A stretch of 64,000 nucleotides of DNA from Phyllobates terribilis (taxonomy: Eukaryota). This document shows positions 2,830 to 54,450 of this stretch, one piece after another. The stretch covers positions 858,390,001 through 858,454,000 of the forward strand of contig NW_027362762.1 in the NCBI RefSeq assembly GCF_046119375.1, given 5' to 3'. Below the pieces are notes generated by a model that was not told the origin of the DNA, made no database searches, and was given only the letters and a program-made list of their open reading frames with translations. Positions within the stretch are counted from its first letter, which is position 1; each line of letters begins with the position of its first letter. Position numbers and translations under genes: made by a program.

Positions 2830-4670
2830 TGGGCGGGGGGGGGCAGGGGATGCGCAGGCCAGGAAAGAGAAAATGCGGGAGCAGGGCGCGTGGGGATGTT
2901 ACGCGGGGCAGAGGGGGGGCAATGCGGACACAGGGTGAAGCGGGAGGTGCTGTCGGTGCAAGGCGGGGGGGGGGGGGGGAGTCACAAGGGCAAGGTAGGA
3001 GGTGACGCGGGCACAAGGTGACGTGGGCACAGGGCAGAAGCAGGGGGAGATGCGGGCGCGGAGCATGGGGCGGGGAAGACGCGGGCGCAGGGCAGAAGCG
3101 GGCACGGGGGCACGAGGAGACGTGGGGCGGGGGGGACTCGCAGGCGCGTGGCAGGAAGGGGGACGTCACGGGGTCGAGGCAGGAGGTGACATGGGCGCTG
3201 GGCAGGGGGGGTGACAGGGGCGCAGGACAGGCGATGATACGGGCGCTGGGCCAGGTGAGCAAAGCGGGCAGGGGGTGATGCGGGCAGAGAGTGATGTGGG
3301 CGCAGGGCAGGCGGTGACAAGAGCAGGTGGTGATGTGGGCGCTGGGCAGGCGGTGATGTGGGCACAGGGTGATGTGGGTGCAAGGCAGGCGGTGATGTGG
3401 GCGCTGGGCAGGTGGTGATGTGGGCGCAGGGCAGGCGGTGACGAGGGCAGAGGGTGATGTGGGCGCTGGGCAGCGGGTGAAGCGGGCGCAGGGTGATGCG
3501 GGGTGCAGGGCAGGCGGTGATGCGGGCACAGGGTGATGTGGGCGCTGGGCAGGGGGAGATGTGGGCACAGGGTGATGTGGGCGCTGGGCAGGGGGAGATG
3601 TGGGCACAGGGCAGGGGTAGATGTGGGCACAGGGCAGGGGGAGATGTGGGCACAGGGCAGGGGGAGATGCGGGCGCAGGGTGATGTGGGTGCAGGGCAGA
3701 GGGTGATGTGGGCGCAGGGCAGGCGGTGATGTGGGTGCAGGGCAGGGGGTGATGTAGGCGGTGACGAGGGCAGAGGGTGATGTGGGCGCAGGGAAGCGGG
3801 TGATGTAGGCGCAGGGTGATGTGGGCGCAGGGTGATGCGGGGTGCAGGGCAGGCGGTGACGAGGGCAGGTGGAGATGTGGGCGCGGGGCAGGCGGTGATG
3901 TGGGCAGAGGGTGATGTGGGTGCAGGGCAGGCGGTGATGAGGGCAGAGGGTGATGTGGGCACAGGGCAGCAGGTGATGTGGGCACACGGTGATGTGGGCG
4001 CAGGGTGATGCGGGGTGCAGGGCAGGCGGTTACGAGGGCAGAGGGTGATGTGGGAGCTGGGCAGGTGGTGATGTGGGCGCAGGGCAGGCGGTGACGAGGG
4101 CAGAGGGTGATGTGGGCGCTGGGCAGCGGGTGATGTGGGCACATAGTGATGTGGGTGCAGGACAGGCGGTGAGGAGGGCAGGGGGAGATGCGGGCGCAGG
4201 GTGATGTGGGTGCAGGGCAGAGGGTGATGTGGGCGCTGGGCAGGTGGTGACGAGGGCAGAGGGTAATGTGGGTGCAGGGCAGGCAGTGATGTGGGCATAG
4301 GGTGATGTGGGCGCAAGGCAGGCGATGAGGAGGGCAGAGGGTGATGTGGGCGCAGGGCAGGGGGTGAGGAGGGCAGAGGGTGATGTGGGCGCTGGGCAGC
4401 GGGTGACGTGGGCACATAGTGATGTGGGTGCAGGACAGGCGGTGAGGAGGGCAGGGGGAGATGCGGGCGCAGGGTGATGTGGGTGCAGGGCAGAGGGTGA
4501 TGTGGGCGCTGGGCAGGCGGTGACGAGGGCAGAGGGTGATGTGGGCGCTGGGCAGCGGGTGATGTGGGCACATAGTGATGTGGGTGCAGGACAGGCGGTG
4601 AGGAGGGCAGGGGGAGATGCGGGCGCAGGGTGATGTGGGTGCAGGGCAGAGGGTGATGTGGGCACGGGGC
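2830..4670. repeat. G-rich ~23-bp minisatellite (gggcagagggtgatgtgggcgca)
   Basis: Long degenerate tandem array; accounts for the overlapping Pro/His/Cys-rich ORFs. Confidence 0.95.
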
Positions 4671-4676
4671 ACTCAC

Positions 4677-7039: not shown

Positions 7040-7520
7040 ACTATATCACCAGACCCATCATCAGAACATGAATACAGCAACAGAATCATCATCTGTGCAT
7101 TAGTACATTAATACAGCACAAGAACCATAATCAGTACATGAATGCACTACCAGAACCATCATCAGTATATGAATACACCACCAGAACAGCTATTAGTATA
7201 TAAATATATTACCAGAACCACCATCAGTACATGAATACTCCACCAGAACCACCATCAGTACAAAAATACAGCACAAGAACCATCATCAGTACAAGAATAC
7301 AGTACCAGAAACATCATCAGTATATGAATACACTACCAAAACCATCATCAGTATATGAATATACCACCAGAACAACCATTTGTATATGAATACATTACCA
7401 GAATCACCATCAGTATATGAATACATCACAAGAACCACCATCATTACATTAATATGGTAGCATAGCTGTCATCAGTATATGAATACAGCACCAGAACCAT
7501 CATCAGTACTTGAATACAGC
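7040..7520. repeat. 31-bp minisatellite (cagcaccagaaccatcatcagtacatgaata)
   Basis: About 15 degenerate direct tandem units. Confidence 0.9.
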
Positions 7521-7613
7521 AACAATATACAATACGGCAGCAATATCATGCGATATACAATGCTATATATAAATGCTATTGCATGACATGAACCTGCAAC
7601 TCCCTGTATGACC

Positions 7614-8101
7614 TTAAAGAAGCACTCTCATTAAAAAATGTTATGGCCTAAACCTGTGTGAATGTATATGTAGTCTAGTGTAGGTATATTAATATACTTA
7701 CTGATTGCTGTCTTCTCTGGTGTCCAGCGCCACTCTGGTCCTCTTCAGAAATATGCAACAAGGAGTTCTGACAGTCTAGGTCACGGAAGTAAAGAACTGG
7801 AAGTGACTTTTCCAATGCAAGTCTATGGAGTGAGAGAACGAGGCTTTTACAGTGTAAGCCTATGGTGCATCAAAGCGAAGCTCCATAGACTTACATCGTA
7901 ATAGCGACCTCCTGCTCACGCATAGAACCCTGTATGATCCGGAGAGTTGGACCTTCAGTCGGGTGACTCAGAAGAGGACGGGAATAGTGTTGGTCAACGG
8001 AGACGACAGCGATCGGTGAGTATATTAAAACACCTACACTTCACTACATAAACATTCACATAGCATTAGTCCCTAAAATGTTAATGGGAGTGCCCCTTTA
8101 A
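7614..8101. mobile_element. T2/Kolobok-type MITE with TTAA ends
   Basis: TTAAAGAAGCACTCTCATT ... AATGGGAGTGCCCCTTTAA imperfect TIRs. Confidence 0.6.
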
Positions 8102-9008
8102 CAATGGGAAGGAGATGATGGGAGTTGTTACCAGCCATAATCAAACTGCTGACCACACAGAAACCACAGTACTGATTAGACACAGGCAGTAGCACCTATA
8201 AACAATTAAACAGCAACTTAACTTTTGGTAGATATTTTATATACTTTAGGCCATTTAATTCTTAGCAGATCGGTGGTCTCTGGGTCTCTGGGTTCTGTGA
8301 CCTCCACAGATAACACAAAAGACCTCTTAAAAGTGGAGATAGGAGCCTATGACTTTCTACTACATCTGTACTTTGTTGTGTGCTCTCCTGTCTCCTAAGC
8401 TGCACACTTCTAAGCGGTATTTTGAGTATCAGTTGGGGTCTCAAGAAGTGGTTTCCCACTGATCTGCTCAGAACTAAAGGAACTAAAGCATATTAAAAAA
8501 AATCTTCCAAAAGTTTAGTTACTCTTTATGTTCACACGTTGAGTATTTTACATCATCATTTGTAAGCCAAAATCAGGACTGGAACAATTAGAGGAAAAGT
8601 ATAATAGAAACACGTCACCATTTCTGCATTTTTCACCCACTCCTTGTTTTGGCTTACAAATACTGATGTAAAATACTGACCAAATACTCAACGTGTGAAC
8701 ATGGCCTAAGATGTATTTATACTGGTGCCATTAATCAGGAACTATTAATACTGCCCCCATACCAGTGGCGTACTGCCAATGGCGACAGGCCACGCGACAG
8801 CTATGGGGCCCGTGAGCCGGGGGGGGCCCGGTGTCAGCGCCTGCACCGTATACCCCCCGCATCAGGCCCACGCCGTTCCTGCATCGGGCCTCCACATCGA
8901 CTGACCCCCACTCTGCATCGGGCCCCCCCCTTCTCTGGTCAGTCAGATGCCGATACAGTTGAAACCAATGAAGGAGGAGGCAGCGTCATGTGACACTCCC
9001 TTTCCCAT

Positions 9009-10117: not shown

Positions 10118-10309
10118 CCATCCTTCCTCCTGTGCATCTGACGCAGCGGTGTGATGATGCGCCACGCTGTGTCAGACAGTGGAGCTGGCAGCTGCTGAGG
10201 TGATGAGAGGAGACGCGCTGCAGAGACTGGAGCGGCGGGGGAGTGAGGAGGGGTAAGTATTTTTTTTTTAAATCAGTTAGTACTGATAATACTGGATGAC
10301 TGGGGGCTG

Positions 10310-11650
10310 CATTTTACCCTATTAGGGAGGCTGCATTTTACCCTATGGGGGAGCTGCATTTTAACCCTTGGGGGGGCTGCATTTTACCTTATTGGAGGGC
10401 TACATTTTACTCTATTGGGGGGGCTACATTTAACTTATGGTGTGGATGCAATTACCTTATGGGGGCCACATTTTTACCCTATGGTGGAGGCTGCATTTTT
10501 ACCCTATTGGGGGAGCTACATTTTACCCTATGGTGAGGCTGCAATTACCCTATGGCTGGCTGCATTTTAACCTACGGGGGGCTGCATTTTAACCTATGGG
10601 GGCTGCATTTTACCCTATGTTGGGGGGCTGTATTCTATTCTTTGGTGGGGGCTGCATTTTACCCTGTGAGGGGCTGCATTATACTGCGTGGGGGACCATG
10701 GGGGGTACATTACACTGCGTGCAGGACCATGACGAGTGCATTATACTGTGTAGAGGACTATGGTGAGTGCATTATACTGTGTGCAGGACCATGGGGAGTG
10801 CACTATACTGTGTGGAGAGCCATGGGGAGTGCATCATACTGTGTGGAGGACCATGGGGAGTGCATTATACTGTGTGGAGGACCATGGCGAGTGAAATATA
10901 CAGTGTGGAGGACCATGGTGAGTGCATTAGACTGTGTGCAGGACCATGGGGAGTGCGCTATACTGTATGGAGGTCCATGGGGAGTGTCTTATACTGTGTG
11001 GTGGACCGTGAGGAGTCCATTATACTATGTGGAGGTCCATGGGGAGTGTCTTATACTGTGTGGAGGACCATGGGGAGTGTCTTATACTGTGTGGAGGACC
11101 ATGGGGAGTGTGTTATACTGCGTGGAGGACCATGGGGAGTGTCTTATACTGTGTGGAGGACCATGGGGAGTGTCTTATACTGTGTGGAGGACCATGGGGA
11201 GTTTCTTATACTATGTGGTGGACCATGGGGAGTGTCTTATACTGTGTGGAGGACCATGGAGAGTGTCTTATACTGTGTGGAGGACCAAGTGGAGTGTCTT
11301 ATACTGTGTGGAGGACCATGGCGAGTGTCTTAAACTGTATGGAGGACAATGGCGAGTGTCTTATACTGTATGGAGGACCATGGCGAGTGCATTATACTCT
11401 GTGGAGGACCATGGCGAGTGCATTATACTCTGTGGAGTGTGAAGGTTTGTGTGGGGGCCATTATACTGTATGTAGGGCCATTATACTGAATAGACAGCTG
11501 TGTGGGGGTCACAGTTGGGGGATCATACTGTGTTGGGGTCACCATAATTTTCTGGGGGAGTTGAGGTGGGGTACAGTAGGGTCATCATACTGTGCATGTG
11601 GAGGGTAATGTGGAGGAATTCACCATGGGGGTATCATACTGTGTCTGGGG
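10310..11650. repeat. Compound minisatellite (21-bp then 31-bp units) inside hAT element
   Basis: ggggctgcattttaccctatg array followed by gaggaccatggggagtgtcttatactgtgtg array. Confidence 0.9.
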
Positions 11651-14994: not shown

Positions 14995-16713
14995 TATGTG
15001 AAGCGTTTTTCACATGCATTTCCGCATGCGGGTTGTCAAGCGCTTTCCAAGCGATTTTAGCATCACTTGGAAAGTGCTTGACAACTTGGTCACACTATAT
15101 AAATCCATACAACCGGCATGGAATTATATAGTGTGACCGTAAAAGAATGGTAAAAAATCCGATCCGATGCATCCGGTCTCCCCGGTGTCTCGCGGTTGTG
15201 CCGATGTCAGTGGTCGCGTGACCCGTCACATGACTAAATGATGTCATGGCAGGTCCTTTTAGGCCATCGCCAGCTGCCGGGGAGACTGGACGCATCGGAT
15301 AAGGAGACCGGGGGCCATCAGAAGGTAAGTATAATATTTATTTTTTATTTTAATTATTTTTTTTTTTACAGGTACTATGGTACCCGGGTCTGGAGAAGAG
15401 TCTCCTCTTCTCCAAACTCGAGTACCATCCGCACATTGAATCGCTTATTATCCGCATGTGCACATGTAGTCATGCGGATATCATGCGATTCAATGCAAGT
15501 CAATGGTAAAATAATTGGTAGTGCTGCGGATTTTTGCGCAATGATAATCCGCAGCGGAAATTTCCGCGGCATGTGCATAGCACATGCGGATTATCATTGG
15601 GGAACATAGCAGATCTTCTACCAAGCGTTTTTTATGCGTTTCTGCGGCGTAATTGCCGCTGCAGAAACGCTTAAAAAACGCATAGTGGGCACACAGCCTT
15701 ATATTCCGATATTCATAAATACTGTAGCTGTGGGTAATGAGGGATGTGGGGGGAGCGACAGCGGCGGAGTAGCGAGACACAGGAGGCAGCAGCCGCCTGT
15801 TGCAGCCCACACTGTGCCCGCTACTAAAGAAAATTAATATTCACTGCTCCCCACACCCATGGTCGTGGGGAGCAGTGAATATTCATTTTTCTTAATAGCC
15901 GGCACACTGGTATATATGGCATCCTTCATCCCTATATGTATGGCCCCCCTCATCCCTCTTCCTTGTATGTATGGCACCCTTCATCCCTGTATGTATGGCC
16001 CCCCTCATCCTGGTATGCTTGGCACCCCTTGATCCCCGTCACGCTGCACAGAAAAAAAAAATAAATTATACTCTCCTCCTCTGTCCTCCAGCGCTGCGTC
16101 CCGCTCTGGAGCCGACAGGGTTCTCAATGTGTGAGCCACGCATGGCGTAACTGCCATGCGCCCTCACACAGTGAGATGTTGTGCCAGAATAGTCACTGCT
16201 CCCCACACCAGGAAGCGACCCCGTTCTGTATTTTCACCAATTATTCAGAATGGAGACGATCAACAAACAGCGTCATCTGCTCTGGAGGACCCAACACTTC
16301 CATGATTTCCATGGATAGCCCAGTGATTACAGACAACCATGTGCAATACTTCATTTCTTCTTTGGAGGCGCTGTAGGGAAATTCAGCACTTGCTGCCGGG
16401 TACTCGCTTACTGCAGGAGGTTTGTGCAGAAGGGACCAATTTGGTCTTTATTCACAGCACATTGGGGCTTTACCTCTGACCCATATGGAGAAACCTCACA
16501 TGAGACTGGACGACCCCATCAAGGTCCATAGTGCTGGAGAATAAGACTCAGGGGCTAAACCCACATTCACTACATGGACGACCGATGGAATAAAGGCAAG
16601 AACAACGATGTAGGGGCTAAAAGAGAGATTTTATTTATAAATTGGGGTTATTATATATTTTACTATTATGTATATGTGTAAATTATTTATCTATCAGAAT
16701 AATCCTATTTATG

Positions 16714-16841
16714 GGCCGTGTTGATCCAGAGGAAGGCGAAAACCCCCTGTGAGGAACAGGCCAATTCTCCTCATATCAGGGGGAAAAATTCCTTCCTGAC
16801 CCCAAATAAAACATGGCGGTCAGAATAAATCCCAGGATCAA
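16714..16841 (-). ncRNA. Structured RNA repeat copy 1, ENE-like (U-rich internal loop)
   Basis: Closing stem TTGATCC/GGATCAA; on the minus strand GGAAGG-AAUUUUU-CCCCCUG...CAGGGGG-UUUUCG-CCUUCC; side arm CTGACC/GGTCAG. Confidence 0.65.
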
Positions 16842-17071
16842 GGGCTGGTACCGAACCTGTGGAATTAAATTCACTGCTAAAAATGTAATAAACTATTCAT
16901 CTTTTTCTAATTTTTGTACTGAGCTACTATGTATATTATGTGTGTGTCAGCTACAAATTATCTGAAAACCTGCCTATATTTAAACTGTATTTATTCATTT
17001 ATTTTTATGTATTTATAATAAGCCATTAATATATGAATTACTTATGCAACTATAAGATTAAATCTATTTAA

Positions 17072-17149
17072 GGCCGTGTTGATCCAGAGGAAGGTGTAAA
17101 ATTCCTTCCTGATCCCAAATATGGTGATCTGGATGAATCCCAGGATCAA
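17072..17149 (-). ncRNA. Structured RNA repeat copy 2, internally deleted (upper stem and U-loop lost)
   Basis: Same outer stems as the other copies, but GGAAGG and CCTTCC are joined by only about 10 nt. Confidence 0.55.
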
Positions 17150-17346
17150 GAGCTCATAGCTAATGTGTTATACATAAGTGAAATTATTTTATTTCAGTAT
17201 TTAATTATTTATATTTTTAGAATAATTTATTTTTATATTTATGTTAACTAATTTTTTAAACCAAAAAATAAATTATATTTTTTTATATATTTTTTTCATT
17301 ATAAATATGAGAATCTGCTTATTTTATTTTACTAAATCTATTTATA

Positions 17347-17468
17347 GGCCGTGTTGATCCAGAGGAAGGCGAAAACCCCACGTGAGAAATGTGCCAATTG
17401 TTCTCGTGACGGGGGGAAAATTCCTTCCTGACCCCAAATATGGCGATCGTGATGAATCCCAGGATCAA
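17347..17468 (-). ncRNA. Structured RNA repeat copy 3, ENE-like
   Basis: Same architecture; inner helix GAGAA/TTCTC replaces GAGGA/TCCTC (compensatory change). Confidence 0.65.
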
Positions 17469-17671
17469 AGGCTCGTACCTAACCTGTAAGTAGTGGAAGT
17501 GAGATTTTTTTTAAAATATTTTAATTAATTGTTATATATTTAGACTAAAAATGTTTTTGGTTTTGTGTAAAATGAACTATTTTTGAAAATATGTTTTAAA
17601 AAGTTGAAAGGTTTTTTTTTCATTGCTTATGTGTGAATCTTACTTATTGATATATAACTAAAGCTATTTAA

Positions 17672-17793
17672 GGCCGTGTAGATCCAGAGGAAGGCGAAAA
17701 CCCCTAATGAGGAATGGGCCAATTGTCCTCATATTAGGGGGAAAATTCCTTCCTGACCCCAAATATGGCGATCAGATTAAATCCCAGGATCAA
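17672..17793 (-). ncRNA. Structured RNA repeat copy 4, ENE-like
   Basis: Same architecture; helix CCCCTAA/TTAGGGG replaces CCCCCTG/CAGGGGG (compensatory change). Confidence 0.65.
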
Positions 17794-18153
17794 AGCCGAA
17801 ATCTCTTTCTATGTGCTATATGTCTATGTGTGCGTGTGCCTATACCTATAGTGTAGTGTGCGGCCTATACCGATCATGTAGTGGGGGTCTATACCTATAG
17901 TGTAGTGTGCGGCCTATACCTATCATGTAGTGTGGGTGATGGGGATGTGATGGGTGTAATACTTACCCGGCCTGTGCTGAGTGAGTTCAGGGATAGTGGG
18001 CCTATATTACACTATTGTTCCTGAACTCACCAGATGGACACTAATCACAGGCCGCTCCCTGGGGCGCTGAAGATCTTCGTGCTGGTTTGATGTCAATCGC
18101 CAGCCCAGGATTGGAGGATGCCAAGTCAAGGTCCTGGTGCAGCGACATGATAG

Positions 18154-19388
18154 TGACGCGCCCCCTGGGCCAGTGCTGTTTGGGGATTACCCGGAGCCGG
18201 ATCAGATGGGGGTTGTAGTCTCCGAGTGGCGGTGACCCGGTCCGTGCCCAGGGTGTCAAACTCAGTGTGTGGCAGTCTTTACAGATGTTGTTAAAGGTCC
18301 TTAATGTCGACTACGCCACCCGTTGATTTGCGGTCACAAGGCCGCCGCTGCAGAAGGGTCCGCTGAGGCTGGTGGTGTGTGTGCAGCTCTGGTAGTATAA
18401 CCCCCAACGGGAGGGGTATAGCCTCAGGGGGTCAGGTGTAGAGGATGGTGGTAGTGAAGGTGCAGGATGATTCAGCAAGAAGACTCAGAGTCGGGCTGTG
18501 CAGTTCAGGGGTTTTTACTTACGGGTGTTCTTATGGTCACTCTGGCCTGAAGTGACCACCCGAGCCGTGCTGCGTCCACCAGGTCCTGGACTCGGCCAAC
18601 CCCCAAGTAATTCTGGAGCGTGGTTCTGAGCTCCCTTTCTGACTTTCCCTCTCTTCTGGCCGTTCTCACCAGGGATCCACCTATGTCCGGCTCCCTCGGG
18701 TCTCTTGGTGGGTACACCTCTTCTGGGTTCCCTGACCCTATACTTGGTCTGCCTTCCTGGTGGATTTGGTGAGGGTCGTGGCAGATCCTGCCCACGACCT
18801 CCGGTCTCTGGCTAAGGTGTGCTTTTCTCTCTGCCAGCTTGGGATCCGGTACCCTAGGTGCCAACCCTTCACCCTGTTGCTTGTATTCTGGGGTCTTGGG
18901 GTTCCTTCTCCTTCTCTCTGGGTCCTTCTGACTCCTCTCTCTCTCTTGGCCTTGGAGCTGGGCCCAGCCGGAACCACAACTCCCTGTCAGCCCTTCTGGC
19001 TGAGCTTCTCTGCTCTGCTCCTCAGGCTAAACTCTGACAGACTGACCCTGATCTAAAATGGTGCCCACCTTATATACTCCCTCTATGTGTGAGCTCAGGT
19101 GACCAGCACCCAATGAGCTCCTAGCCTTACCCAGATTGCTCCCCCTATCTGCCCCTACACTACTGGGATGTTCCACCCCCCTCCCACTCCAGCCAGGGAC
19201 AGACACTATCGTACCTGCACATAAACTAGTGGGAGTACCGTCGATCTGTCCCCCGGAAATGGGATGTATGTAGTGTATGCAGCTAACTGAGCTCAGTTCC
19301 ACACTCCATCCTTACCCGGGAGTGGAATACCACACCTCTGGCTTGAGGTGTAATACCCCTGTAGCAGCCAAATCCTCAGGGTGCTACA
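18154..19388 (-). repeat. 3' LTR of the CSD element
   Basis: Near-identical to 21737-22971; TATATAA at 19070-19076, AGTAAA at 18514-18519. Confidence 0.95.
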
Positions 19389-19398
19389 TTCCCCCCTG
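19389..19398 (-). other. Polypurine tract
   Basis: Minus strand CCAGGGGGGAA directly precedes the TGT of the 3' LTR; near-identical tract at 60910-60919. Confidence 0.85.
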
Positions 19399-19815
19399 GT
19401 AAATCACAGCACGTCCTCGGGCTGTAAGAGAACAAAAACATCCACAAACATACATTTTTTTTTTCATAAAACATAAACATATAAAACAATATATATATCA
19501 GCATAAACTTTTCATAAATAACACTCTTGTTCTTCCGGCCACGGTGCAACTTGTGACCGGGTAAAGTGCGACAGTCTCTTCAAGAAAAACAACAGTTTCC
19601 TATAAAACCGGTAGGGGGCGCCTTAGGAAGCGCAACTATATACAAGGGAAGGTATTAGGAAAGGAATGACCGCTCTCAGTCCTCGGTCAGTGGGAATAGG
19701 GACACACGGGTTTCAGTTCAATTTGCTGGTCCCAACGGGGACTATATTTTAACTAGCAGCAGTAACAGTTCTTATACCCTTGACGGGTAACTATGTACAG
19801 TCTCTTTACCGTACT

Positions 19816-21621
19816 TTAATGACGGCGTACTCCTGCTCCTCCCTCAGACCCGTCCGGGTCCTCTTGCTCCTCTTCACACCGTAGCTCCTCCTCCGTCAGC
19901 CGGTGTACATGGAGGGCGTAGGGTCCTTTGGCACACTTGTGCCGGGTGAACGTGACCTCGTCCCCTACATATAGGTCACGTCCTCTGCGTCCCTCCGGCA
20001 GATGGGACTCCACGTCTCTGCGGGTGACAAAGACGTCGCCGGGGGTGTGATGATCCCTGATGAAACCCCAACCGTGCTGCAGTTGGAATTTAATTACAGT
20101 CCCGGTGGCACGGGGACCATGGGCTGCACGGGGGTTCCTCCTGGTCCGGCTCTTCTGCTCTGCACTCTGTTCCTGCAGCCGCTGCTCTCGGACCCGCCTC
20201 TCTCTTCGCTCCCGGTCGAAGACCTCTAACTGCTGCCGGCAGCACTCCGCACGCTCAGCTGCGGCTGCCCGAGTCTCTTGGGTGAATCCCATGAGGTCTC
20301 CTCCGGTGGGGTCCCACGCAAACTGCGCTTCCTCCAACGAGAGTGGGGTGATCTTAACGGGCTTCGGAACCGGAATCAGGGGCTCATCTAGGGGTCTTTC
20401 TTTCCGGAGTCGGGGATGGTGGAATTCCGGTGGCCACACAAAGGGCTGCCCATCCGGGCACGTGTGCTGGGCAAACAAGTCTTCACCCAGGTGCGGCACT
20501 CTAGATGTTGAGGGCGCGGTGGTGGAAGCGGCGCCCGGGTTCGCCAGGCCTTGCGACCAGGCCTGGGGTACCCTGAACGTAAAGGGCACCGTGAAGACGG
20601 CGGCGCCCGGGGTTACTTGGCCCAGCGACCAGGCCGGTGGCTCAGTGGAGGTAGAGGGCGCTGTTGGTACTGCGGCGCCCGGGGGTACTAGACCTTGCGA
20701 CCAGGCCGGTGGTGTTTCCTGCTTTGCCGCGCTCAGGGTTGAGGCGCGTGACGTCACAGGGGTCGCGGCCGCGGCTTCTGCTTGAGGCCTTGTCTGGAGC
20801 GGTGACGATGCAGCGACGGGCACGGCAGGGGGAATTTCGGGCTCTGCGACGGGGAGCTGGGGCAGGCACGCGGTTTCTCGGCTCGGGGTAGGGACGTCCC
20901 CTTTACCTGCCTCCGTCTGTTCAGCTCCCTCCTCGGCGCCGTCTCCGGCCTTCACTCCTCCTGCACCATCCTCAGAGGCGGTCTGTCTCCTCGTCTCGGG
21001 TGGCGTGCTCCGCTGGCGGGTTCTTGCCTGCAGGGCCATCTCTCGGCTCCACTCCGTCAGCGTCTCTCGCTGCACCTGGGCCATCCTCCATGCGAGGCGC
21101 TCCAGCGCGGTCTGCGCACACTCCCGGTCTCGGGGGAGCTGTGCCAGGACCTCCACTAAGCCTAGTGGGGTTGTTGCTTGCAGCAGGCTCCTGACCACTG
21201 GGTCGGTGCTGCCTGACTCTCCTTCCATCTCCGGGTACGACTTCATCGGAGTCCTCTCCAGACTTCTTGTCTCCGGGTGCGCTCTCTCCAGACTCCTCCA
21301 GGCTGCACCCATCTTCGCTCTTTTCTTCTGTCTCCGCTCACATTGAAGGTGGTCCCGGGGCAACTTTGTGATTGTCAGTTCCAGGGGCAGTTCTCTCACG
21401 CTGATGGACATATCAATCATCACAGTCTCTGCTGGTGGGGGCGGTTTCCACTTTTGGCGCCATTTCTTGACCTGGCCCACGATGGGAGGTGACCTTTTGC
21501 CACCCTCTGGCACGCCCATAATGGCGTCCGCACTTCCAAGGCGGGAAATCTTCTGGAAATGGCGGGAAAAAGCTGCAGATGGCGGGCAACCGGCGGGAAA
21601 CGATCCGTGATGGCGTTCCAT
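19816..21621 (-). CDS. About 601-aa protein: low-complexity Ala/Pro/Thr region, coiled-coil-like segment, C-terminal cold-shock domain
   Basis: Open from the first ATG (gccATGG, 21621; ORF track extends to a GTG at 21711) to the stop. Residues at 19897-20109, GTVIKFQLQHGWGFI...DVFV...LYVGDEVTF...KGPYALHV, match the CSD consensus (GTVKWF..KGFGFI..DVFVH..L.EG..V.F..KGP.A..V). Confidence 0.85.
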   Translation of the reverse strand: MERHHGSFPAGCPPSAAFSRHFQKISRLGSADAIMGVPEGGKRSPPIVGQVKKWRQKWKPPPPAETVMIDMSISVRELPLELTITKLPRDHLQCERRQKKRAKMGAAWRSLERAHPETRSLERTPMKSYPEMEGESGSTDPVVRSLLQATTPLGLVEVLAQLPRDRECAQTALERLAWRMAQVQRETLTEWSREMALQARTRQRSTPPETRRQTASEDGAGGVKAGDGAEEGAEQTEAGKGDVPTPSRETACLPQLPVAEPEIPPAVPVAASSPLQTRPQAEAAAATPVTSRASTLSAAKQETPPAWSQGLVPPGAAVPTAPSTSTEPPAWSLGQVTPGAAVFTVPFTFRVPQAWSQGLANPGAASTTAPSTSRVPHLGEDLFAQHTCPDGQPFVWPPEFHHPRLRKERPLDEPLIPVPKPVKITPLSLEEAQFAWDPTGGDLMGFTQETRAAAAERAECCRQQLEVFDRERRERRVREQRLQEQSAEQKSRTRRNPRAAHGPRATGTVIKFQLQHGWGFIRDHHTPGDVFVTRRDVESHLPEGRRGRDLYVGDEVTFTRHKCAKGPYALHVHRLTEEELRCEEEQEDPDGSEGGAGVRRH

Positions 21622-21714
21622 GGCGGGGACCCTCTGGAACCGGCGGGAGACTTCTTTTTGAGGTAAATGTGGACTTTCTTCAGGCACGCAGTACCCGGTG
21701 GTTGCGGGCACGTA

Positions 21715-21732
21715 ATCCTGCCGACTACGCCA
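21715..21732 (-). other. Primer binding site complementary to the 3' end of tRNA-Ser (AGA/TGA-type)
   Basis: TGGCGTAGTCGGCAGGAT, 4 nt after the 5' LTR; 18/18 to the vertebrate tRNA-Ser 3' end ATCCTGCCGACTACGCCA as recalled. Confidence 0.9.
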
Positions 21733-21736
21733 AAGT

Positions 21737-22971
21737 TGACGCGCCCCCTGGGCCAGTGCTGTTTGGGGATTACCCGGAGCCGGATCAGATGGGGGTTGTA
21801 GTCTCCGAGTGGCGGTGACCCGGTCCTTGCCCAGGGTGTCAAACTCAGTGTGTGGCAGTCTTTACAGATGTTGTTAAAGGTCCTTAATGTCGACTACGCC
21901 ACCCGTTGATTTGCGGTCACAAGGCCGCCGCTGCAGAAGGGTCCGCTGAGGCTGGTGGTGTGTGTGCAGCTCTGGTAGTATAACCCCCAACGGGAGGGGT
22001 ATAGCCTCAGGGGGTCAGGTGTAGAGGATGGTGGTAGTGAAGGTGCAGGATGATTCAGCAAGAAGACTCAGAGTCGGGCTGTGCAGTTCAGGGGTTTTTA
22101 CTTACGGGTGTTCTTATGGTCACTCTGGCCTGAAGCGACCACCCGAGCCGTGCTGCGTCCACCAGGTCCTGGACTCGGCCAACCCCCAAGTAATTCTGGA
22201 GCGTGGTTCTGAGCTCCCTTTCTGACTTTCCCTCTCTTCTGGCCGTTCTCACCAGGGATCCACCTATGTCCGGCTCCCTCGGGTCTCTTGGTGGGTACAC
22301 CTCTTCTGGGTTTCCTGACCCTATACTTGGTCTGCCTTCCTGGTGGATTTGGTGAGGGTCGTGGCAGATCCTGCCCACGACCTCCGGTCTCTGGCTAAGG
22401 TGTGCTTTTCTCTCTGCCAGCTTGGGATCCGGTACCCTAGGTGCCAACCCTTCACCCTGTTGCTTGTATTCTGGGGTCTTGGGGTTCCTTCTCCTTGTCT
22501 CTGGGTCCTTCTGACTCCTCTCTCTCTCTTGGCCTTGGAGCTGGGCCCAGCCGGAACCACAACTCCCTGTCAGCCCTTCTGGCTGAGCTTCTCTGCTCTG
22601 CTCCTCAGGCTAAACTCTGACAGACTGACCCTGATCTAAAATGGTGCCCACCTTATATACTCCCTCTATGTGTGAGCTCAGGTGACCAGCACCCAATGAG
22701 CTCCTAGCCTTACCCAGATTGCTCCCCCTATCTGCCCCTACACTACTGGGATGTTCCACCCCCCTCCCACTCCAGCCAGGGACAGACACTATCGTACCTG
22801 CACATAAACTAGTGGGAGTACCGTCGATCTGTCCCCCGGAAATGGGATGTATGTAGTGTATGCAGCTAACTGAGCTCAGTTCCACACTCCATCCTTACCC
22901 GGGAGTGGAATACCACACCTCTGGCTTGAGGTGTAATACCCCTGTAGCAGCCGAATCCTCAGGGTGCTACA
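21737..22971 (-). repeat. 5' LTR of the CSD element
   Basis: Followed by the PBS; offset exactly 3583 bp from the 3' LTR. Confidence 0.95.
22653..22659 (-). promoter_or_regulatory. TATA box of the 5' LTR
   Basis: TATATAA followed about 10 nt later by a CCATTTT/GCCATCTT-like motif; equivalent sites in the other LTRs (about 9277, 13667, 14034). Confidence 0.6.
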
Positions 22972-23155
22972 ATAGCAGTGGTCCGGCATGAAGATGTTAT
23001 GGATAGAGATGATGTTTTAGGGCAGCCGAGGTGAGAAACAGCAGCAGAGATATGAGGTACGGGTCAGGAGGCAAAGAGTTCTGGGCAGTTGGCACGGGGT
23101 CATCCTGCACGGGGTCAGAACATTTGATGGGATTTATCCTCAGAGAAGGATGATC

Positions 23156-23705
23156 TTACCGTGCCCAGCTTGGTGACACGTAATTAAATCCGGGCACGGG
23201 GTTACGGGCTTTCTTTTCCTCCGGCCACTGCATAAGATGGTTCTCCAGAATTGGCCTGAATGGTGGCTGTGCTCTCCTTTTCTCCAGATCCTCCCAGCCG
23301 ATGTTGGTAAAGAATGGATGCAGTCTGATGTTCCCGCACACATCCAATCGCTTCTGAGGATTTTTGCACAGCAGCTTCTTGATACGATCTTTCAAGTCAG
23401 CATCAAGCCAAGATGGAATTTCAAGCTTTCCTTTGGTTATAGCTCTGTATGCCATATTGCTAATGGAGTCGGTGTAAAATGGGGAGCGTCCTGTGGCCAT
23501 CTTGGACACCACAATCCCCAGGCTCCACCAATCCACTGCTGTGCCATATCCTTTTTTGCGATGCACCTCGGGTGCCATGAAATGGAAAGTGCCCGTCACT
23601 CCAGAGATGTTATTGGAGGAGGTGACGCCATCTTGGGCGAGCCCCAGGTCGATAATACGAATGTGGCCATCTGCATCCAACATGATGTTTTCCGGCTTAA
23701 GATCT
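23156..23705 (-). CDS. PKC-delta-like (AGC) Ser/Thr kinase, exon 4
   Basis: Acceptor ttcattgcAG; (R)DLKPEN, DLG, GTFHFMAPE, DWWSLG and an AGC-type tail PPFRP...GFNYVSP; stop TAA at 23156-23158. Confidence 0.88.
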
Positions 23706-23873
23706 CTGCAATGAAATAAGACAATAGGATAAGAAATCTGCCCAGTGATACAGGAGATGGAGAATTGGTCACTGCAAGAATAGGAAGAATAGGCAGAAAG
23801 GAGCCCAGGAAAGTTGGGGGCAATATTTTTAGCATGTAAAGGGGACAGAGAGAAAGAGGAAAGTTCTGCTTAC

Positions 23874-23936
23874 CGATGGACGATGTTGTGTCCATGGAGG
23901 AACTGGAGGCCACATACAATCTCTGCTGTGTAGAAT
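23874..23936 (-). CDS. PKC-delta-like kinase, exon 3 (FYTAEIVCGLQFLHGHNIVHR)
   Basis: AG/GT bounded, 63 nt, phase 2-2, joins exons 2 and 4 in frame. Confidence 0.88.
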
Positions 23937-24092
23937 CTGATGGAGAGAACAGAGTGTAGTATCAATGCCATCGCTGACACCTCCTTCCCACCTGGGCTAC
24001 ATTCCCTGTCAGCCCTCTTTCTGCTACATCCCAACCTCCACTTTTATTTCCACCCCTCTTCTCACTTTTTGGTAGATCTTCCTCTTTCTCAC

Positions 24093-24346
24093 CTTAAGGT
24101 GTCGATGTTCAAGTAGCCGCACATCTTAATCAAAGCCCCCAGGCTGCCGCCGGACAGATACTCCGTGATGAAATAAGCGCGCTTACGAGACTGCTGTGCG
24201 GCATAGAGATGACATAAGAACGGGCAGTCTCTGGCTGCCAGGAGTATCCGCCGCTCTCTCATAATCATGTTTTCATTGACCTCCCTTTTCTCGATCATTT
24301 TTACAGCCGTATAGATGTTTCGGCTGGGGATTGATGTGAGGACCAC
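24093..24346 (-). CDS. PKC-delta-like kinase, exon 2 (AVK, helix C, hinge)
   Basis: Acceptor ttttctcAG, donor GTGAG, 254 nt; AVKMIEK...ERRIL...PFLCHLY...FITEYLSGGSL. Confidence 0.88.
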
Positions 24347-24875: not shown

Positions 24876-27800
24876 CTAGCTTTTGAACCCATTCTACACC
24901 CGGGTGGCGAGCATTTTTATTGGTATATGGACTACCATGCTGTTATTTGTGCTGCCCCCATCCTGGTATTTGTGCTGCCCCCATCCTGGTATTTGTGCTG
25001 CCCCCATCCTGGTATTTGTGCTGCCCCCATCCTGTCCACCCATCCTATCCTGGTATGCATGGCACCCCTCATCCCTATCCTGGTATGCATGGCACACCTC
25101 ATCCCTATCCTGGTATCCATGGCACCCCTCATCCCCATCCTGGTATGCATGGCACCCTTCACCCCCAATCCTGGTATGCATGGCACCCCTCACCCCACAA
25201 ACCTGGTATGCATGGCACCCCTCACCCCCAATCCTGGTATGCATGGCACCCTTCATCCCAATACTGGTATGCATGGCACCCTCATCCCTAATTTTGGTAT
25301 ACATGGCACCCCTCATCCCTATTCTGGTATGTATGGTACCACTCATCCTGGTATACATAGCACCCCTCATCCCAATCCTGGTATGTGTGGCCTCCTCATC
25401 CCCCAATCCTGGTATGCATGGTACACCAACCCTCGTCATGGTATGCATGGCACCCCTCATCCCTGTTCTGGTATGTATGGTAACCCTCATCCCTATCCTG
25501 GTATGTATGGTACCCCTCATCCTGGCATGCATGGCACCCCATCCCTCATCCTGGTATGCATGGTATCCCGCATCCCTATTCTGGTACGTATGGTACCCCT
25601 CATCCTGGTATACATGGCACCCCTCATTCCAATTCTGGTATGTATGGCCTCCTCATCCCCCAATCCTGGTTTGCATGGCCCCCTCATCCCTATCCTGGTA
25701 TGCATGGCACTCCTCATCCCCCAATCCTGGTATGCATGGCACCCCATCCTTTATTCTGGTATGCATGGTACCCCTCATCTCTATTCTGGTATGCATGGTA
25801 CCCCTCAAGCCCAATGCTGATATGCATGGCACCCCTCAACCCCAATGCTGGTATGCATGGCACTCCTCACCCCCCAATCCTGGTATGTATTGCACCCATC
25901 ATCCCCAATCCTGGTATGCATGGTCCCCTCACCCCCAATCCTGGTATGCATGGTCCCCTCACTCCCAATCCTGTTATGCATGGTCCCCTCACCCCCCAAT
26001 CCTGGTATGCATGGTACCCCTCATCCCTATTCTGGTATGCATGGTACCCCTCATCTTCCAATCCTGGTATGCATGGTACCCCTCATCCCTATTCTGGTAT
26101 GCATGGTACCCCTCATTCCTATTCTGGTATGTATGGTGCCCCAACCCTCATCCTGGTATGCATGGCACCCCTCATCCCTGTTCTGGTATGTATGGTAACC
26201 CTCATCCCTCTCCTGGTATGTATGGTACCCCTCATCCTGGCATGCATGGCACCCCATCCCTCATCCTGGTATGCATGGTATCCCACATCGCTATTCTGGT
26301 ACGTATGGTACCCCTCATCCTGGTATACATGGCACCCTTCATCCCAATACTGGTATGCATGGCACCCTCATCCCTAATTTTGGTATACATGGCACCCCTC
26401 ATCCCTATTCTGGTATGTATGGTACCACTCATCCTGGTATACATAGCACCCCTCATCCCAATCCTGGTATGTATGGCCTCCTCATCCCCCAATCCTGGTA
26501 TGCATGGTACACCAACCCTCGTCATGGTATGCATGGCACCCCTCATCCCTGTTCTGGTATGTATGGTAACCCTCATCCCTATCCTGGTATGTATGGTACC
26601 CCTCATCCTGGCATGCATGGCACCCCATCCCTCATCCTGGTATGCATGGTATCCCGCATCCCTATTCTGGTACGTATGGTACCCCTCATCCTGGTATACA
26701 TGGCACCCCTCATTCCAATTCTGGTATGTATGGCCTCCTCATCCCCCAATCCTTGTTTGCATGGCCCCCTCATCCCTATCCTGGTATGCATGGCACTCCT
26801 CATCCCCCAATCCTGGTATGCATGGCACCCCATCCTTTATTCTGGTATGCATGGTACCCCTCATCTCTATTCTGGTATGCATGGTACCCCTCAACCCCAA
26901 TGCTGATATGCATGGCACCCCTCAACCCCAATGCTGGTATGCATGGCACTCCTCACCCCCCAATCCTGGTATGTATTGCACCCATCATCCCCAATCCTGG
27001 TATGCATGGTCCCCTCACCCCCAATCCTGGTATGCATGGTCCCCTCACTCCCAATCCTGTTATGCATGGTCCCCTCACCCCCCAATCCTGGTATGCATGG
27101 TACCCCTCATCCCTATTCTGGTATGCATGGTACCCCTCATCTTCCAATCCTGGTATGCATGGTACCCCTCATCCCTATTCTGGTATGCATGGTACCCCTC
27201 ATTCCTATTCTGGTATGTATGGTGCCCCAACCCTCATCCTGGTATGCATGGCACCCCTCATCCCTGTTCTGGTATGTATGGTAACCCTCATCCCTCTCCT
27301 GGTATGTATGGTACCCCTCATCCTGGCATGCATGGCACCCCATCCCTCATCCTGGTATGCATGGTATCCCACATCGCTATTCTGGTACGTATGGTACCCC
27401 TCATCCTGGTATACATGGCACCCCTCATTCCACTTCTGGTATGTATGGCCTCCTCATCCCCCAATCCTGGTTTGCATAGCCCCCTCATCCCTATCCTGGT
27501 ATGCATGGCACTCCTCATCCCCCAATCCTGGTATGCATGGCACCCCATCCTTTATTCTGGTATGCATGGTACCCCTCATCTCTATTCTGGTATGCATGGT
27601 ACCCCTCAACCCCAATGCTGATATGCATGGCACCCCTCAACCCCAATGCTGGTACGCATGGCACTCCTCACCTCCCAATCCTGGTATGTATTGCACCCCT
27701 CATCCCCAATCCTGGTATGCATGGTCCCCTCACCCCCAATCCTGGTATGCATGGTCCCCTCACCCCCAATCCTGGTATGCATGGTCCCCTCACCCCCCAA

Positions 27801-29264
27801 TCCTGGTATGCATGGTACCCCTCATCCCTATTCCGGTATGCATGGTACCCCTCATCTTCCAATCCTGGTATGCATGGTACCCCTCATCCCTATTCTGGTA
27901 TGCATGGTACCCCTCATTCCTATTCTGGTATGCATGGTACCCCTCATCCTGGTCTGCATGGCACTCCATCCATCATCCTGGTATGCATGGTACTCCGCAT
28001 TCCTGTCCTGGTATGCATGGTACCCCTCATCCCTATTCTGGTAGGCATGGTACTCCTCATCCCCAATCCTGGTATGCATGGTACCCCTCACCCCCCAATC
28101 CTGGTATGTATGGCACCCCTCATCCCCAATCCTGGTATGCATGGTCCCCTCACCCCCAATCCTGGTATGCATGGTCCCCTCACCCCCCAATCCTGGTATG
28201 CATGGCACCCCTCATCCCTATTCTGGTATGCATGGTACCTCTCATTCTCCAATCCTGGTATGCATGATACCCCTCATCCCTATTCTGGTATGCATGGTAC
28301 CCCTCATTCCTATTCTGGTATGCATGGTACCCCTCATCCTGGTCTGCATGGCACTCCATCCCTCATCCTGTTATGCATGATACCCCGCATTCCTCTCCTG
28401 GTATGCATGGTTCCCCTCATCCCTATTCTGGTATGCATGGTAATCCTCATCCCCAATTCTGGTATGCATGGCACTCCTCATCCCCAATGCTGGTATGCAT
28501 GGCACCCCTCACCCCCCAATCCTGGTATGTATGGCACCCTTCATCCCCAATCCTGTTATGCATGGTACCCCTCACCCCCGAATCCTGGTATGTATAGCAC
28601 CCCTTATCCCCAATCCTGGTATGCATGGTACCCCTCATCCTCCAATCCTGGTATGCATGGTACCCCTCATCCCCCAATCCTGGTATGCATGGTCCCCTCA
28701 ACCCCAATCCTGTTATGCATGGTCCCCTCACCCCCAATCCTGGTATGTATGGTACCCCTCATACACCAATCCTGGTATGTGTGGCCCCCTCACCCCCCAA
28801 TCCTGGTATGTATGGCACCCCTCATCGCTTTCACAGTGCACACATGCAAAATAAAAAAACACTTATACTCACCTGTGCTCCAGCGCTGCTGTGTCCTGTT
28901 CTGCCGGAGGCAGGGGGAGGAGTGCGGTGCCGGAGTAGAAGTGCGTCTTCAGTAAAATGGCGCCAGAGAGCACTATGCGCATGAGCCGATTCCGACTCCT
29001 TCACTCCTGCCCCAGTCTCCGGTGAGAAGAGAGGCGCCGCAGCACCGCTCCTCCCGGTCAGGTAACTATGTAAATATGGCGCCGGAGTTCGCGGTATGCG
29101 TTCAGGGTCAACGCATACAGCGATAACCGGAGCCATACACACTCCTCTTACCGGTAACGGCTCCATGCGTTCTTCTGTCTGGAGCCAGACTGCGCAGGCG
29201 TGTCGCACTTGCGCAGTCTGTAAAGACTTCAGACAGAGGGTCGCTTGTAGCGTTATATTATAGA
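24876..29264 (-). mobile_element. Non-autonomous Helitron carrying a ~3.9-kb minisatellite, in kinase intron 1
   Basis: Minus strand starts TCTATAATATAACGC (29264) and ends with a CCCG...GGG hairpin then CTAG (24876), followed by T. Confidence 0.7.
24945..28825. repeat. Minisatellite (about 21-32-bp units, CTGGTATGCATGG core) with 1086-bp and 715-bp higher-order duplications
   Basis: Identical or near-identical ORF translations recur at +1086 (25747/26833, 26257/27343) and +715 (26833/27548). Confidence 0.95.
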
Positions 29265-42561: not shown

Positions 42562-44239
42562 AAGGGCCGGCGTCAGCTCCCGGCGCACCCGGGCAAATGC
42601 CGGGGCCCTGAGCAGGCAGAGGGGCCCACTGGCGGTCGCGCACCCCGCTGAGCTATGGGCGGAGGAGAGCGGTGTCAGCGCCCGCCCTTCTCCGCCGCTT
42701 GCTCAGTGCCCCGGCAGCCGGATACTTACCTCTCCCCGTGCCTCCGCAGATCCGCTGTCTTCCTGCTCTGCGCTCCCTGTGACGTCTCAGGTCAGAGGGC
42801 GCGGTGACGCCTTTACACCGCGTCCTCCCCTGAGCCGTCACAGGGAGCGCAGAGCAGGAAGACGCCGACAACGCTGGAGTTCGGACCCGAGCAGCGGGCA
42901 GCGGGCAGCAGGTAGCAGGTGAGAAGGAGGGAGGTGAGTATTTGATTTTTTTTTTTTTAATGTATGGAGGCATTGGGCAGTATAAAGAGAAGGGTGGGGG
43001 CATCCTGCATGGGCCATTATAAAGAGAGGGGGGACATCCTGCATGGGGCATTATAAAGAGAGGGGGGACATCCTGCATGGGGCATTATAAAGAGGGCGGG
43101 GGGGTGACATCCTGCATGGGGCATTATAAGGTGGGGAACAGCCTGCATGGGGCATTATAAAGGGGGGGGGCAGCCTGTATGGGGCATTATGTGGGGGGTA
43201 ACAGCCTGCATGGAGCATTAAAAGGGGGGGGGGCTGTATGGGGCATTATGTGGGGGGAACAGCCTGCATGGAGCATTATAAGGGGGGGGGGGCAGCCTGT
43301 ATGGAGGATTATGTGGGGGGTAACAGCCTGCATGGAGCATTAAAAGGGGGGACAGCCTGTATGGGGCATTATGTGGGGGGTAAAAGCCTGCATGCAGCAT
43401 TATATGGGGGCCAGTATCCTGTATGGAGCGTTATAAGGGGACCGGTATCCTGTATGGAGCGTTATAAGGGGACCAGTATCCTGTATGGAGCGTTATATGG
43501 GGGCCAGTATTCTGTATGGAACCTTATATGGGGGCCAGTATTCTGTATGGAACCCTATATGGGGGCCAGTATTCCGTATGGAGCCTTATATGGAGGCCAG
43601 TATTCCGTATGGAGCCTTATATGGGGGCCAGTATTCCGTATGGAGCCTTATATGGGGGCCAGTATTCTGTATGGAACCTTATATGGGGGCCAGTATTCCG
43701 TATGGGGCCTTATATGGGGGCCAGTATTCCGTATGGAGCCTTATATGGGGGCCAGTATTCCGTATGGAGCCTTATATGGGGGCCAGTATTCCGCATGGAG
43801 CCTTATATGGGGGTCAGTATTCCGCATGGAGCCTTATATGGGGGTCAGTATTCCGCATGGAGCCTTATATGGGGGCCAGTATTCCTTATGGGGCCTTATA
43901 TGGGGGCCAGTATTCCGTATGGGGCCTTATATGGGGGCTAGTATTCCGTATGGGGCCTTATATGGGGGCCAGTATTCCGTATGAAGCATTATATGGGGGC
44001 CAGTATTCCGTATGGAGCCTTATATGGGGGCCACTATTCTGTGTGGAGCGATTCACCGGTTTCTGAGCTATTGTGGAATTTACAATAGATATCACTCATG
44101 TAATGTAAGAAGTGAAATCTTTGCATTGTACTATATATATTTCTCCGCCGTATCTCTGCATCATGAATCGTGGTATGTGTTAAAGGGGCCCACTGAGACT
44201 CTTTCACCCGGGGCCCAGAAAAACCTGGAGCCGGCCCTG
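42562..44239. mobile_element. Non-autonomous hAT element with internal ~31-bp minisatellites (42990-44035)
   Basis: TIRs (A)AGGGCCGGC / GCCGGCCCTG; exact 8-bp TSD GTTGTACG. Confidence 0.85.
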
Positions 44240-54423: not shown

Positions 54424-54450
54424 CATATAATGCCGAATGCAGGATGTCAC
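51250..54450 (-). CDS. L2 ORF2 (APE endonuclease plus reverse transcriptase), uninterrupted
   Basis: WNARS, ITETWL, GDFN, SDH (APE); [31 protein letters not shown] (RT). The first ~9 codons of the tracked ORF lie in flanking minisatellite, so the true start is uncertain. Confidence 0.92.

Follow-up and report, generated by a model that had tools for sequence, protein, structure and literature searches.

The question raised by this locus is what four similar, structured repeats represent downstream of a protein kinase gene of the frog Phyllobates terribilis. The repeats lie in a stretch of 64,000 nucleotides (nt), called the window here (RefSeq assembly GCF_046119375.1, contig NW_027362762.1, positions 858,390,001 to 858,454,000), and an earlier note, made from the letters alone, had read them as elements resembling an ENE (element for nuclear expression), an RNA structure that clamps poly(A). 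Our analysis indicates that the repeats are best explained as a conserved, structured RNA element, repeated here and acting in cis, that belongs to the 3' untranslated regions (UTRs) of a kinase family that is expanded in hyloid frogs. Clamping of poly(A) by an ENE-like core is the mechanism that best fits the comparisons made below, and we put its probability at roughly 40%.

Four copies of the unit, named c4, c3, c2 and c1, are present on the minus strand at 16712-17797 of the window. The earlier note had reported this number and placement, and both hold: a 21-nt core pattern occurs four times in the window compared with 0.01 expected from shuffles, and a 27-nt core pattern occurs three times compared with 0.00 expected. 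The first unit of the mRNA, c4 (17670-17797), scores 144.8 bits with the covariance model (CM) described below and carries its 5' and 3' U tracts at 17742-17745 and 17697-17700; the corresponding tracts of c3 (17345-17472; 147 bits) are located at 17417-17420 and 17372-17375. The last unit, c1 (16712-16845; 148.2 bits), has a 5' U5 tract at 16784-16788 and a 3' U4 tract at 16739-16742, and its fold has a z value of -4.6. These three copies match the earlier description of a conserved unit of approximately 120 nt, but c2 (17070-17153; 88.6 bits), as delimited by alignments, is an internal-deletion derivative: it has lost its entire upper stem along with the 3' U tract, and what is retained is the closing stem (P1), the side hairpin (P2) and the GGAAGG/CCUUCC helix. 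The spacers had been called unrelated, which is wrong, because a segment of unit, spacer and unit can be aligned by blastn (75.5% over 384 nt) and MAFFT aligned most of every spacer across the array. The array thus arose by tandem duplication, its period being approximately 320 base pairs (bp), and the repeated segment also includes a poly(A)-signal-like sequence.

Each full unit (about 100-130 nt) is predicted to fold as a three-way junction of P1, P2 and P3, in which P1 is the closing stem UUGAUCC/GGAUCAA, P2 is the side hairpin, and P3 is a long hairpin composed of a GGAAGG/CCUUCC base, a 6-7 x 6 internal loop (AAUUUU(U)/UUUUCG), four to five C-G pairs and a variable top. The same fold had been described in the earlier note, and we recovered it in each full copy. 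Across the units, the most conserved part reads GGAAGG-AA-U(3-5)-CCCC...GGGG-U(4-8)-NN-CCUUCC. The top of P3 ranges from a 5-bp hairpin in the frog genus Pristimantis to about 13 pairs in the window and is always paired; the minimal form, found in Pristimantis, is GGAAGG-AA-U5-CCCCC-loop-GGGGG-U6-CG-CCUUCC.

Compensatory changes between the copies, another feature reported earlier, are evident in the window: the upper helix GAGGA/UCCUC of c1 and c4 is replaced by GAGAA/UUCUC in c3 with pairing kept, and three consecutive upper pairs differ between c1 and c4 and are still paired. Covariation persists when the alignment is enlarged with relatives from other frogs. Standard pairs occupy 91.6% of the pair cells, a share that drops to 42-63% on sliding the 3' partners by 1-3 columns, two-sided changes occur at 10 pairs, and the observed pairing and covariation were matched by none of 500 shuffles, all of these figures being taken from a model-fitted alignment, which leans towards the model. 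When RNAalifold was applied de novo to a plain MAFFT alignment, P1, P2 and the base of P3 were recovered, with pair switches between CG and UA (8:6) in P1 and between AU and GC (9:4) at the bottom of P3. The pair type never switches in the GGAAGG/CCUUCC helix or in the two innermost C-G pairs of the upper stem (14/14 for the innermost pairs). G-U cells number 43 and A-C cells 12 in the alignment, and this excess fits an RNA of the kinase strand and fits neither an antisense RNA nor a palindrome in the DNA. Together, the alignments support the view that the fold is under selection.

The internal loop of P3 is the part that recalls an ENE. U tracts are present on both of its strands in 13 of 13 full units, as in an ENE. 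The 5' tract is U3-5 overall (U5 in 12 of 16 units) and the 3' tract varies from U4 to U8; for one unit, at 1008-1134 of the Dendropsophus locus L009, the 3' tract was read off the alignment. The tracts of the window are only U4-5 (5') and U4 (3'). The earlier note had considered the U tracts to be fixed, and the comparison bears this out in that they are conserved on both sides of the G-C clamp across four frog lineages. Above the loop, the unit sequences show the U tracts running straight into the CCCC/GGGG stem, and the two upper-stem pairs that adjoin the loop contain some non-standard cells in the model-fitted alignment. Below it, the G-C pairs are invariant and are set apart from the U tracts by two unpaired nt per strand (AA on one strand and CG, CU, AU or UG on the other).

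A covariance model (CM R1) was built from four units and used to search 144 kb on both strands, a small sample of each genome, at a cut-off of E < 1e-3. The search returned 17 units from Dendrobatidae, Leptodactylidae, Hylidae and Pristimantis, all 17 of them on the kinase-sense strand. Sixteen lie behind a kinase last exon; the exception is the unit at 1008-1134 of L009, whose upstream sequence falls outside the fetched locus. Where the fetched loci include the upstream sequence, the units begin 130-1030 nt past the end or stop codon of the kinase gene. The scattered copies in both orientations that a dispersed transposable element would leave were not seen in the 144 kb, and the relationship to CR1 or other transposable elements that had been suggested in the earlier note consequently finds no support. 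Whether paralogous kinases carry such arrays, a further point raised there, is answered by the kinase loci of Pristimantis, Engystomops and Dendropsophus, all of which have units. Two loci of Pristimantis euphronides each contain three units and one P1-only mini-unit (UUGAUCCAGGGAAUAUU-CCCUGGAUCAACAC), which opens the array (L005, 14092-14120; L006, 5494-5535); these mini-units, like c2, are deletion derivatives that keep the closing stem. A third Pristimantis locus has a degenerate copy 270 nt after the kinase exon. The Engystomops pustulosus locus (L008) contains two units, at 8043-8165 and 8309-8437, and that of Dendropsophus ebraccatus (L009) contains one unit behind the gene in addition to the one near the locus start.

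Between frog families, the core of the unit is 85-93% identical, whereas the flanking UTR is about 70% identical. The unit c4 and Engystomops L008:8043-8165 have the GGAUCUAC variant in common and are 93% identical in the core, and the upper stem of c1 is 90% identical to that of L008:8309-8437. As c4 and c1 each have a counterpart of their own in Engystomops, the first and last units must have been distinct before the families split. Scans of viral and metagenome contigs with exact DNA patterns yielded no unit matches, and peptides translated from spurious open reading frames (ORFs) of the unit had no matches in a protein database.

Evidence that the units belong to kinase mRNAs is provided by two Logan contigs, L002 and L003, in which the kinase coding sequence is contiguous and continues on the same strand into a unit. 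The genomic genes carry an intron that is missing from both contigs, and the contigs are thus spliced. In L002, the unit begins about 235 nt past the stop codon, the contig ends inside the first 27 nt of the unit, and the 3' UTR can be aligned to that of the window on either side of an inserted long terminal repeat (LTR) element (see below). In L003, a full unit lies 207 nt past the stop codon and is followed by the first half of a second unit; this full unit folds into the same three-way junction, with a U5/U7 internal loop and a G-C pair closing below it. Because the units are found within spliced kinase complementary DNA (cDNA) contigs, they are part of the mRNA 3' UTR, as the earlier note had proposed for the minus (kinase-sense) strand; its alternative of a separate long non-coding RNA (lncRNA) is unsupported, given that the unit is contiguous with the kinase coding sequence in both contigs. 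The element is accordingly placed, as an ENE is, on the sense strand of an RNA of polyadenylated type, upstream of the poly(A) signal. For the array of the window itself, some runs within one study contain 50-70% of its words and sister runs 1-2%, a weak hint that it is transcribed, with the kinds of run being guessed. We have withdrawn a reading of the run depths as those of a low-copy repeat, because the runs are probably RNA-like and depth is uninformative on copy number.

A probable terminal poly(A) site is suggested by the sequence of the minus strand at 16585-16635. It consists of AATAAA (16630-16635), which starts 77 nt past the end of c1, a cleavage position predicted near 16611, and a GU/U-rich downstream element at about 16585-16608. 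Contig boundaries at 16604-16611 in two runs fall 19-25 nt past AATAAA, although neither strand nor RNA ends can be read from these contigs. The earlier note had remarked on AATAAA in the spacers, where in DNA this AT-rich it is expected by chance; the terminal AATAAA with its GU-rich block, however, is homologous in other frogs, matching the 3' end of the Dendropsophus locus L009 at 74% and resembling that of the Engystomops locus L008 by eye. The distance from the unit end to AAUAAA is 54-178 nt, being 54-77 nt in Pristimantis and c1 and about 177 nt in Engystomops and Dendropsophus. Since the tandem repeat includes the signal block, the signal of each candidate poly(A) site is preceded by a unit at a distance of 50-180 nt.

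An ENE is defined as a stem-loop with a U-rich internal loop beside G-C pairs, acting with a poly(A) tail (PMC7583470), and it cannot do without its U tracts or the G-C pairs that flank them (PMC7583470, PMC12501189). Known ENEs are found in viral lncRNAs, MALAT1, NEAT1 and RNAs of transposons from plants, fungi and a small number of further lineages, and that of the PAN RNA of KSHV (Kaposi's sarcoma-associated herpesvirus) forms five U-A-U triples and three A-minor contacts (PMC7583470). Like the PAN ENE, the frog unit has a U tract on both strands of the internal loop of a stem-loop, C-G pairs directly above the tracts and a G-C-rich stem below, a 3' location some 80-200 nt upstream of the poly(A) site, and a variable apical part. 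The minimal Pristimantis form, with its U5/U6 tracts and 5-bp G-C hairpin, resembles the crystallised core of the PAN ENE (PMC7583470). The differences are that PAN is a viral lncRNA whereas the host of the frog unit is a cellular protein-coding mRNA, that the frog tracts of the window are U4/U4 with two extra nt per strand between the U tracts and the lower stem, and that the frog hairpin sits in a conserved three-way junction with P1 and P2 and occurs in tandem copies, where a triple helix is only putative.

The ENEs of plant and fungal transposons, such as the double ENE of rice TWIFB1 and the ENE of Arabidopsis Evade/Copia93, resemble the frog unit in that they also reside in the 3' UTR of a translated, polyadenylated mRNA, and their critical parts are again the U tracts and the flanking G-C pairs (PMC12501189). 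The lower domain of the double ENEs tolerates non-canonical bulges beside the loop, which may be compared with the 2-nt spacers of the frog unit. However, transposon ENEs mostly have two domains in one hairpin, whereas the frog units are single-domain, lie 250-325 nt apart and each have a poly(A)-signal block; and the host is a mobile element in the one case and in the other a kinase gene family, without dispersed copies in the 144 kb searched. MALAT1 and NEAT1 (MEN beta) share with the frog unit a vertebrate cellular RNA as host and a U-rich internal loop flanked by G-C pairs. The window also has A7-A9 runs about 60 nt past c3 and c4, which are not conserved in the other species. Unlike MALAT1 and NEAT1, the frog element has, in place of RNase P processing, a poly(A) site with a canonical AAUAAA, and ARAGORN found no transfer RNA (tRNA)-like gene in the window such as a MALAT1-like locus would have; the frog U tracts are also much shorter than those of MALAT1 and NEAT1 and lack a C or G interruption.

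By analogy with these systems, part of the poly(A) tail of the same mRNA would be gripped between the two U tracts. The clamp would be a short U-A-U triple helix of four to five triples, braced by the flanking G-C pairs, and a tail held in this manner would undergo slower deadenylation and decay. The tandem duplication copied the unit as one piece with the poly(A)-signal block that lies downstream of it.

The gene to which the array would belong is a short PKC-delta-like kinase. Its coding sequence occupies 23156..24346 on the minus strand in two exons separated by an intron of about 300 nt, according to the ORF list and tblastn, in which P0001 and P0012 covered 24346-23159 with an intron-sized gap; the last-exon ORF spans 23156-23683 (minus strand), with the stop codon TAA at 23156-23158. 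The best protein matches, annotated 'protein kinase C delta type-like', are from Phyllobates terribilis (87%) and Ranitomeya imitator (83-87%), and by this protein similarity the genome is that of a dendrobatid. The family of short, kinase-domain-only 'PKC delta/theta type-like' proteins is hugely expanded in hyloid frogs: 2458 proteins reached E <= 1e-30 among 8000 scored candidates, and the listed matches come from Dendrobatidae, Bufonidae, Hylidae, Leptodactylidae, Eleutherodactylidae, Rhinodermatidae and Pristimantis. Xenopus is represented among the listed matches of the last-exon search by only two distant PKC delta(-like) entries.

The 3' UTR of this gene is interrupted. Its first part (22972..23155, minus strand) agrees with the 3' UTR of cDNA contig L002 at roughly 80%, in an alignment made by eye only, and is without a poly(A) signal. 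It is followed by a 4.8-kb LTR retroelement (18154..22971, minus strand), recognised from its LTR copies, TG...CA ends and target-site duplication CTAT, which has the same orientation as the kinase and a single long ORF (19816-21711, minus strand) with a cold-shock-like domain at its end. As this element lies between copies of the target-site duplication and is not present in the homologous UTRs of L002, L008 and L009, it must be a later insertion that split the kinase 3' UTR. Once it is subtracted, the first unit lies about 540 nt from the stop codon. The earlier placement of the array downstream of the kinase is thus right in that the array belongs to the kinase 3' UTR, but it is not simply downstream, given the intervening element. 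The insertion probably either cuts the kinase mRNA short within the 5' LTR or promotes read-through transcription of the array.

The second part of the 3' UTR (17798..18153, minus strand) contains a 25/49-bp minisatellite and a motif, GGGTAAGT, resembling a 5' splice site; it aligns to L008 7150-7443 (69%), to L009 9591-9846 (74%) and also to the L002 UTR. Similar 5' splice-site-like motifs (G|GTRAGT) are found in the 3' UTR at five loci, 15-730 nt upstream of the first unit, at about 17966-17975 in the window, 1113-1122 in L002, 1319-1339 in L003, 7308-7317 in L008 and 9781-9790 in L009. The motif is a perfect CAG|GTAAGT in L002 and L009 and is not found in Pristimantis; it could be the donor of a 3' UTR intron or a site for the U1 small nuclear ribonucleoprotein that affects polyadenylation. 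A short inverted repeat, GGTGAGTTCAGG...CCTGAACTCAC, at 17990-18035 of the window lies in UTR sequence that L002 does not have and may be a small insertion similar to a miniature inverted-repeat transposable element. The window as a whole is very rich in 21-39-bp minisatellite arrays (1795-2040, 3266-4671, 7047-7521, 10302-11437, 25047-28826, 42970-44049, 50395-51019 and 54424-54744), among them a 3.8-kb array of a 30-bp unit in the kinase-upstream region, and several of the arrays make long spurious ORFs.

Several points weigh against the poly(A) clamp. No Rfam family matches: the covariance models gave no match at the gathering score in the 64-kb window, ENE families being included as far as the library holds them, and at E <= 10 only chance-level matches on the array and on the Pristimantis units. 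The 3' tract is only U4 in the window and two other families, and one Engystomops unit has a 5' tract of U3, whereas PAN forms five triples; four tandem U-U mismatches could also stack as a continuous helix. Two nt per strand separate the U tracts from the lower G-C pairs, whereas the G-C pairs of PAN that take part in the A-minor contacts adjoin the loop. The sequence conservation of P1, P2 and GGAAGG/CCUUCC far exceeds the needs of an ENE and thereby suggests an additional or a different ligand, such as a protein. Transcription of the window array itself is only indirectly supported in this genome, where the array may have been cut off from the kinase by the LTR insertion.

The excess conservation is what a 3' UTR structure free of any triple helix would readily explain, either as a protein platform for stability, translation or localisation, or as a U-rich upstream element that tunes cleavage, polyadenylation or the choice of site. 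We consider this, the main rival, quite possible, if somewhat short of an even chance. The invariance of GGAAGG/CCUUCC, of the junction and of the P2 loop goes beyond what the fold needs; the unit is duplicated along with the poly(A)-signal block and stands 54-77 nt from AAUAAA in Pristimantis and c1; and the tracts of the window are short (U4), with 2-nt spacers that break the canonical ENE geometry. On the other hand, the combination of two U tracts, one per strand, with a G-C clamp directly next to them is the specific signature of ENEs, a symmetry that linear U-rich upstream elements do not require, and none of the Rfam families of protein-binding 3' UTR structures (U1A PIE, SECIS, CDE and others) matches the unit. 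The tandem nature of the array, together with the deletion derivatives (c2 and the P1-only mini-units of Pristimantis), might instead point to a transposon-derived or selfish palindromic repeat without present RNA function, in which similarity is maintained by recent duplication, gene conversion and template switching between the arms; the three adjacent pair changes between c1 and c4 could be a single template-switch event, and ENE-bearing transposons are known in plants, fungi and fish retroviruses. This appears unlikely, because in the 144 kb searched no copy is antisense to the kinase or stands apart from a kinase 3' flank, the closest counterparts of c4 and of c1 are two different Engystomops units, which makes both older than the family split, the core is 85-93% identical compared with about 70% in the flanks, and 43 G-U versus 12 A-C cells are unexpected for a DNA palindrome.

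Action at the DNA level, as an array of transcription-factor sites or a cruciform element serving the kinase cluster, would account for the invariance of GGAAGG and of GGAATTTTCC-like motifs, and the unit contains CAGGAAG and GGAAAATTCC, which may be ETS-like and Rel/NFAT-like on the strength of consensus sites only. Such action would leave unexplained the compensatory changes in P1, P2 and P3, the strand-specific G-U pairs, the single orientation relative to the gene and the presence of the unit inside the mature mRNA, and we regard it as very improbable. Just as little weight, in our opinion, attaches to each unit being an independent small-RNA gene or precursor (a small nucleolar RNA (snoRNA), microRNA (miRNA), ribozyme or retrozyme, or tRNA-like RNA), or to the array being a separate lncRNA. 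Small-RNA genes often occur in tandem, and a period of about 320 bp combined with a three-way junction is reminiscent of the hammerhead satellites and retrozymes of amphibians. However, hammerhead and other ribozymes, retrozymes, snoRNA, miRNA, SECIS and U1A PIE all lack an Rfam match, and by eye the C/D and H/ACA boxes are absent or unconserved and there is no hammerhead core. A tRNA-like or mascRNA candidate is rejected on the ARAGORN result for the window, and a sense-strand gene of RNA polymerase III on the internal UUUU runs, at which this polymerase would terminate; the B-box-like GGTTCGGTACC that precedes c1 has no conserved equivalent in the other copies. Structured 3' modules of LTR elements in this genome show no sequence relationship to the unit. 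The contiguity of the unit with the kinase coding sequence in the cDNA contigs argues against both the small-RNA gene and the lncRNA.

Irrespective of the mechanism, it is well supported that the units constitute an unannotated structured RNA family whose host is the 3' UTRs of an expanded frog kinase family. Full-text literature searches turned up neither a paper on this element nor an ENE from amphibians or from any vertebrate protein-coding mRNA. If the units are ENEs, they would represent a new form, with one domain per unit, set in a three-way junction and repeated along with poly(A)-signal modules, and with cellular kinase mRNAs as host. On the most far-reaching reading, which we judge somewhat short of an even chance, they would be the first ENE-type poly(A) clamp in vertebrate cellular protein-coding mRNAs, an ancient element of one massively expanded kinase family that would predate the split of dendrobatids, leptodactylids, hylids and terraranans and would be arranged in modules of clamp and poly(A) signal, so that each alternative 3' end has a stabiliser of its own. 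The minimal, long and deletion forms are natural variants with which the triple-helix hypothesis can be directly tested. If this reading is true, animal cells use poly(A) clamping for ordinary mRNAs and link it to alternative polyadenylation.

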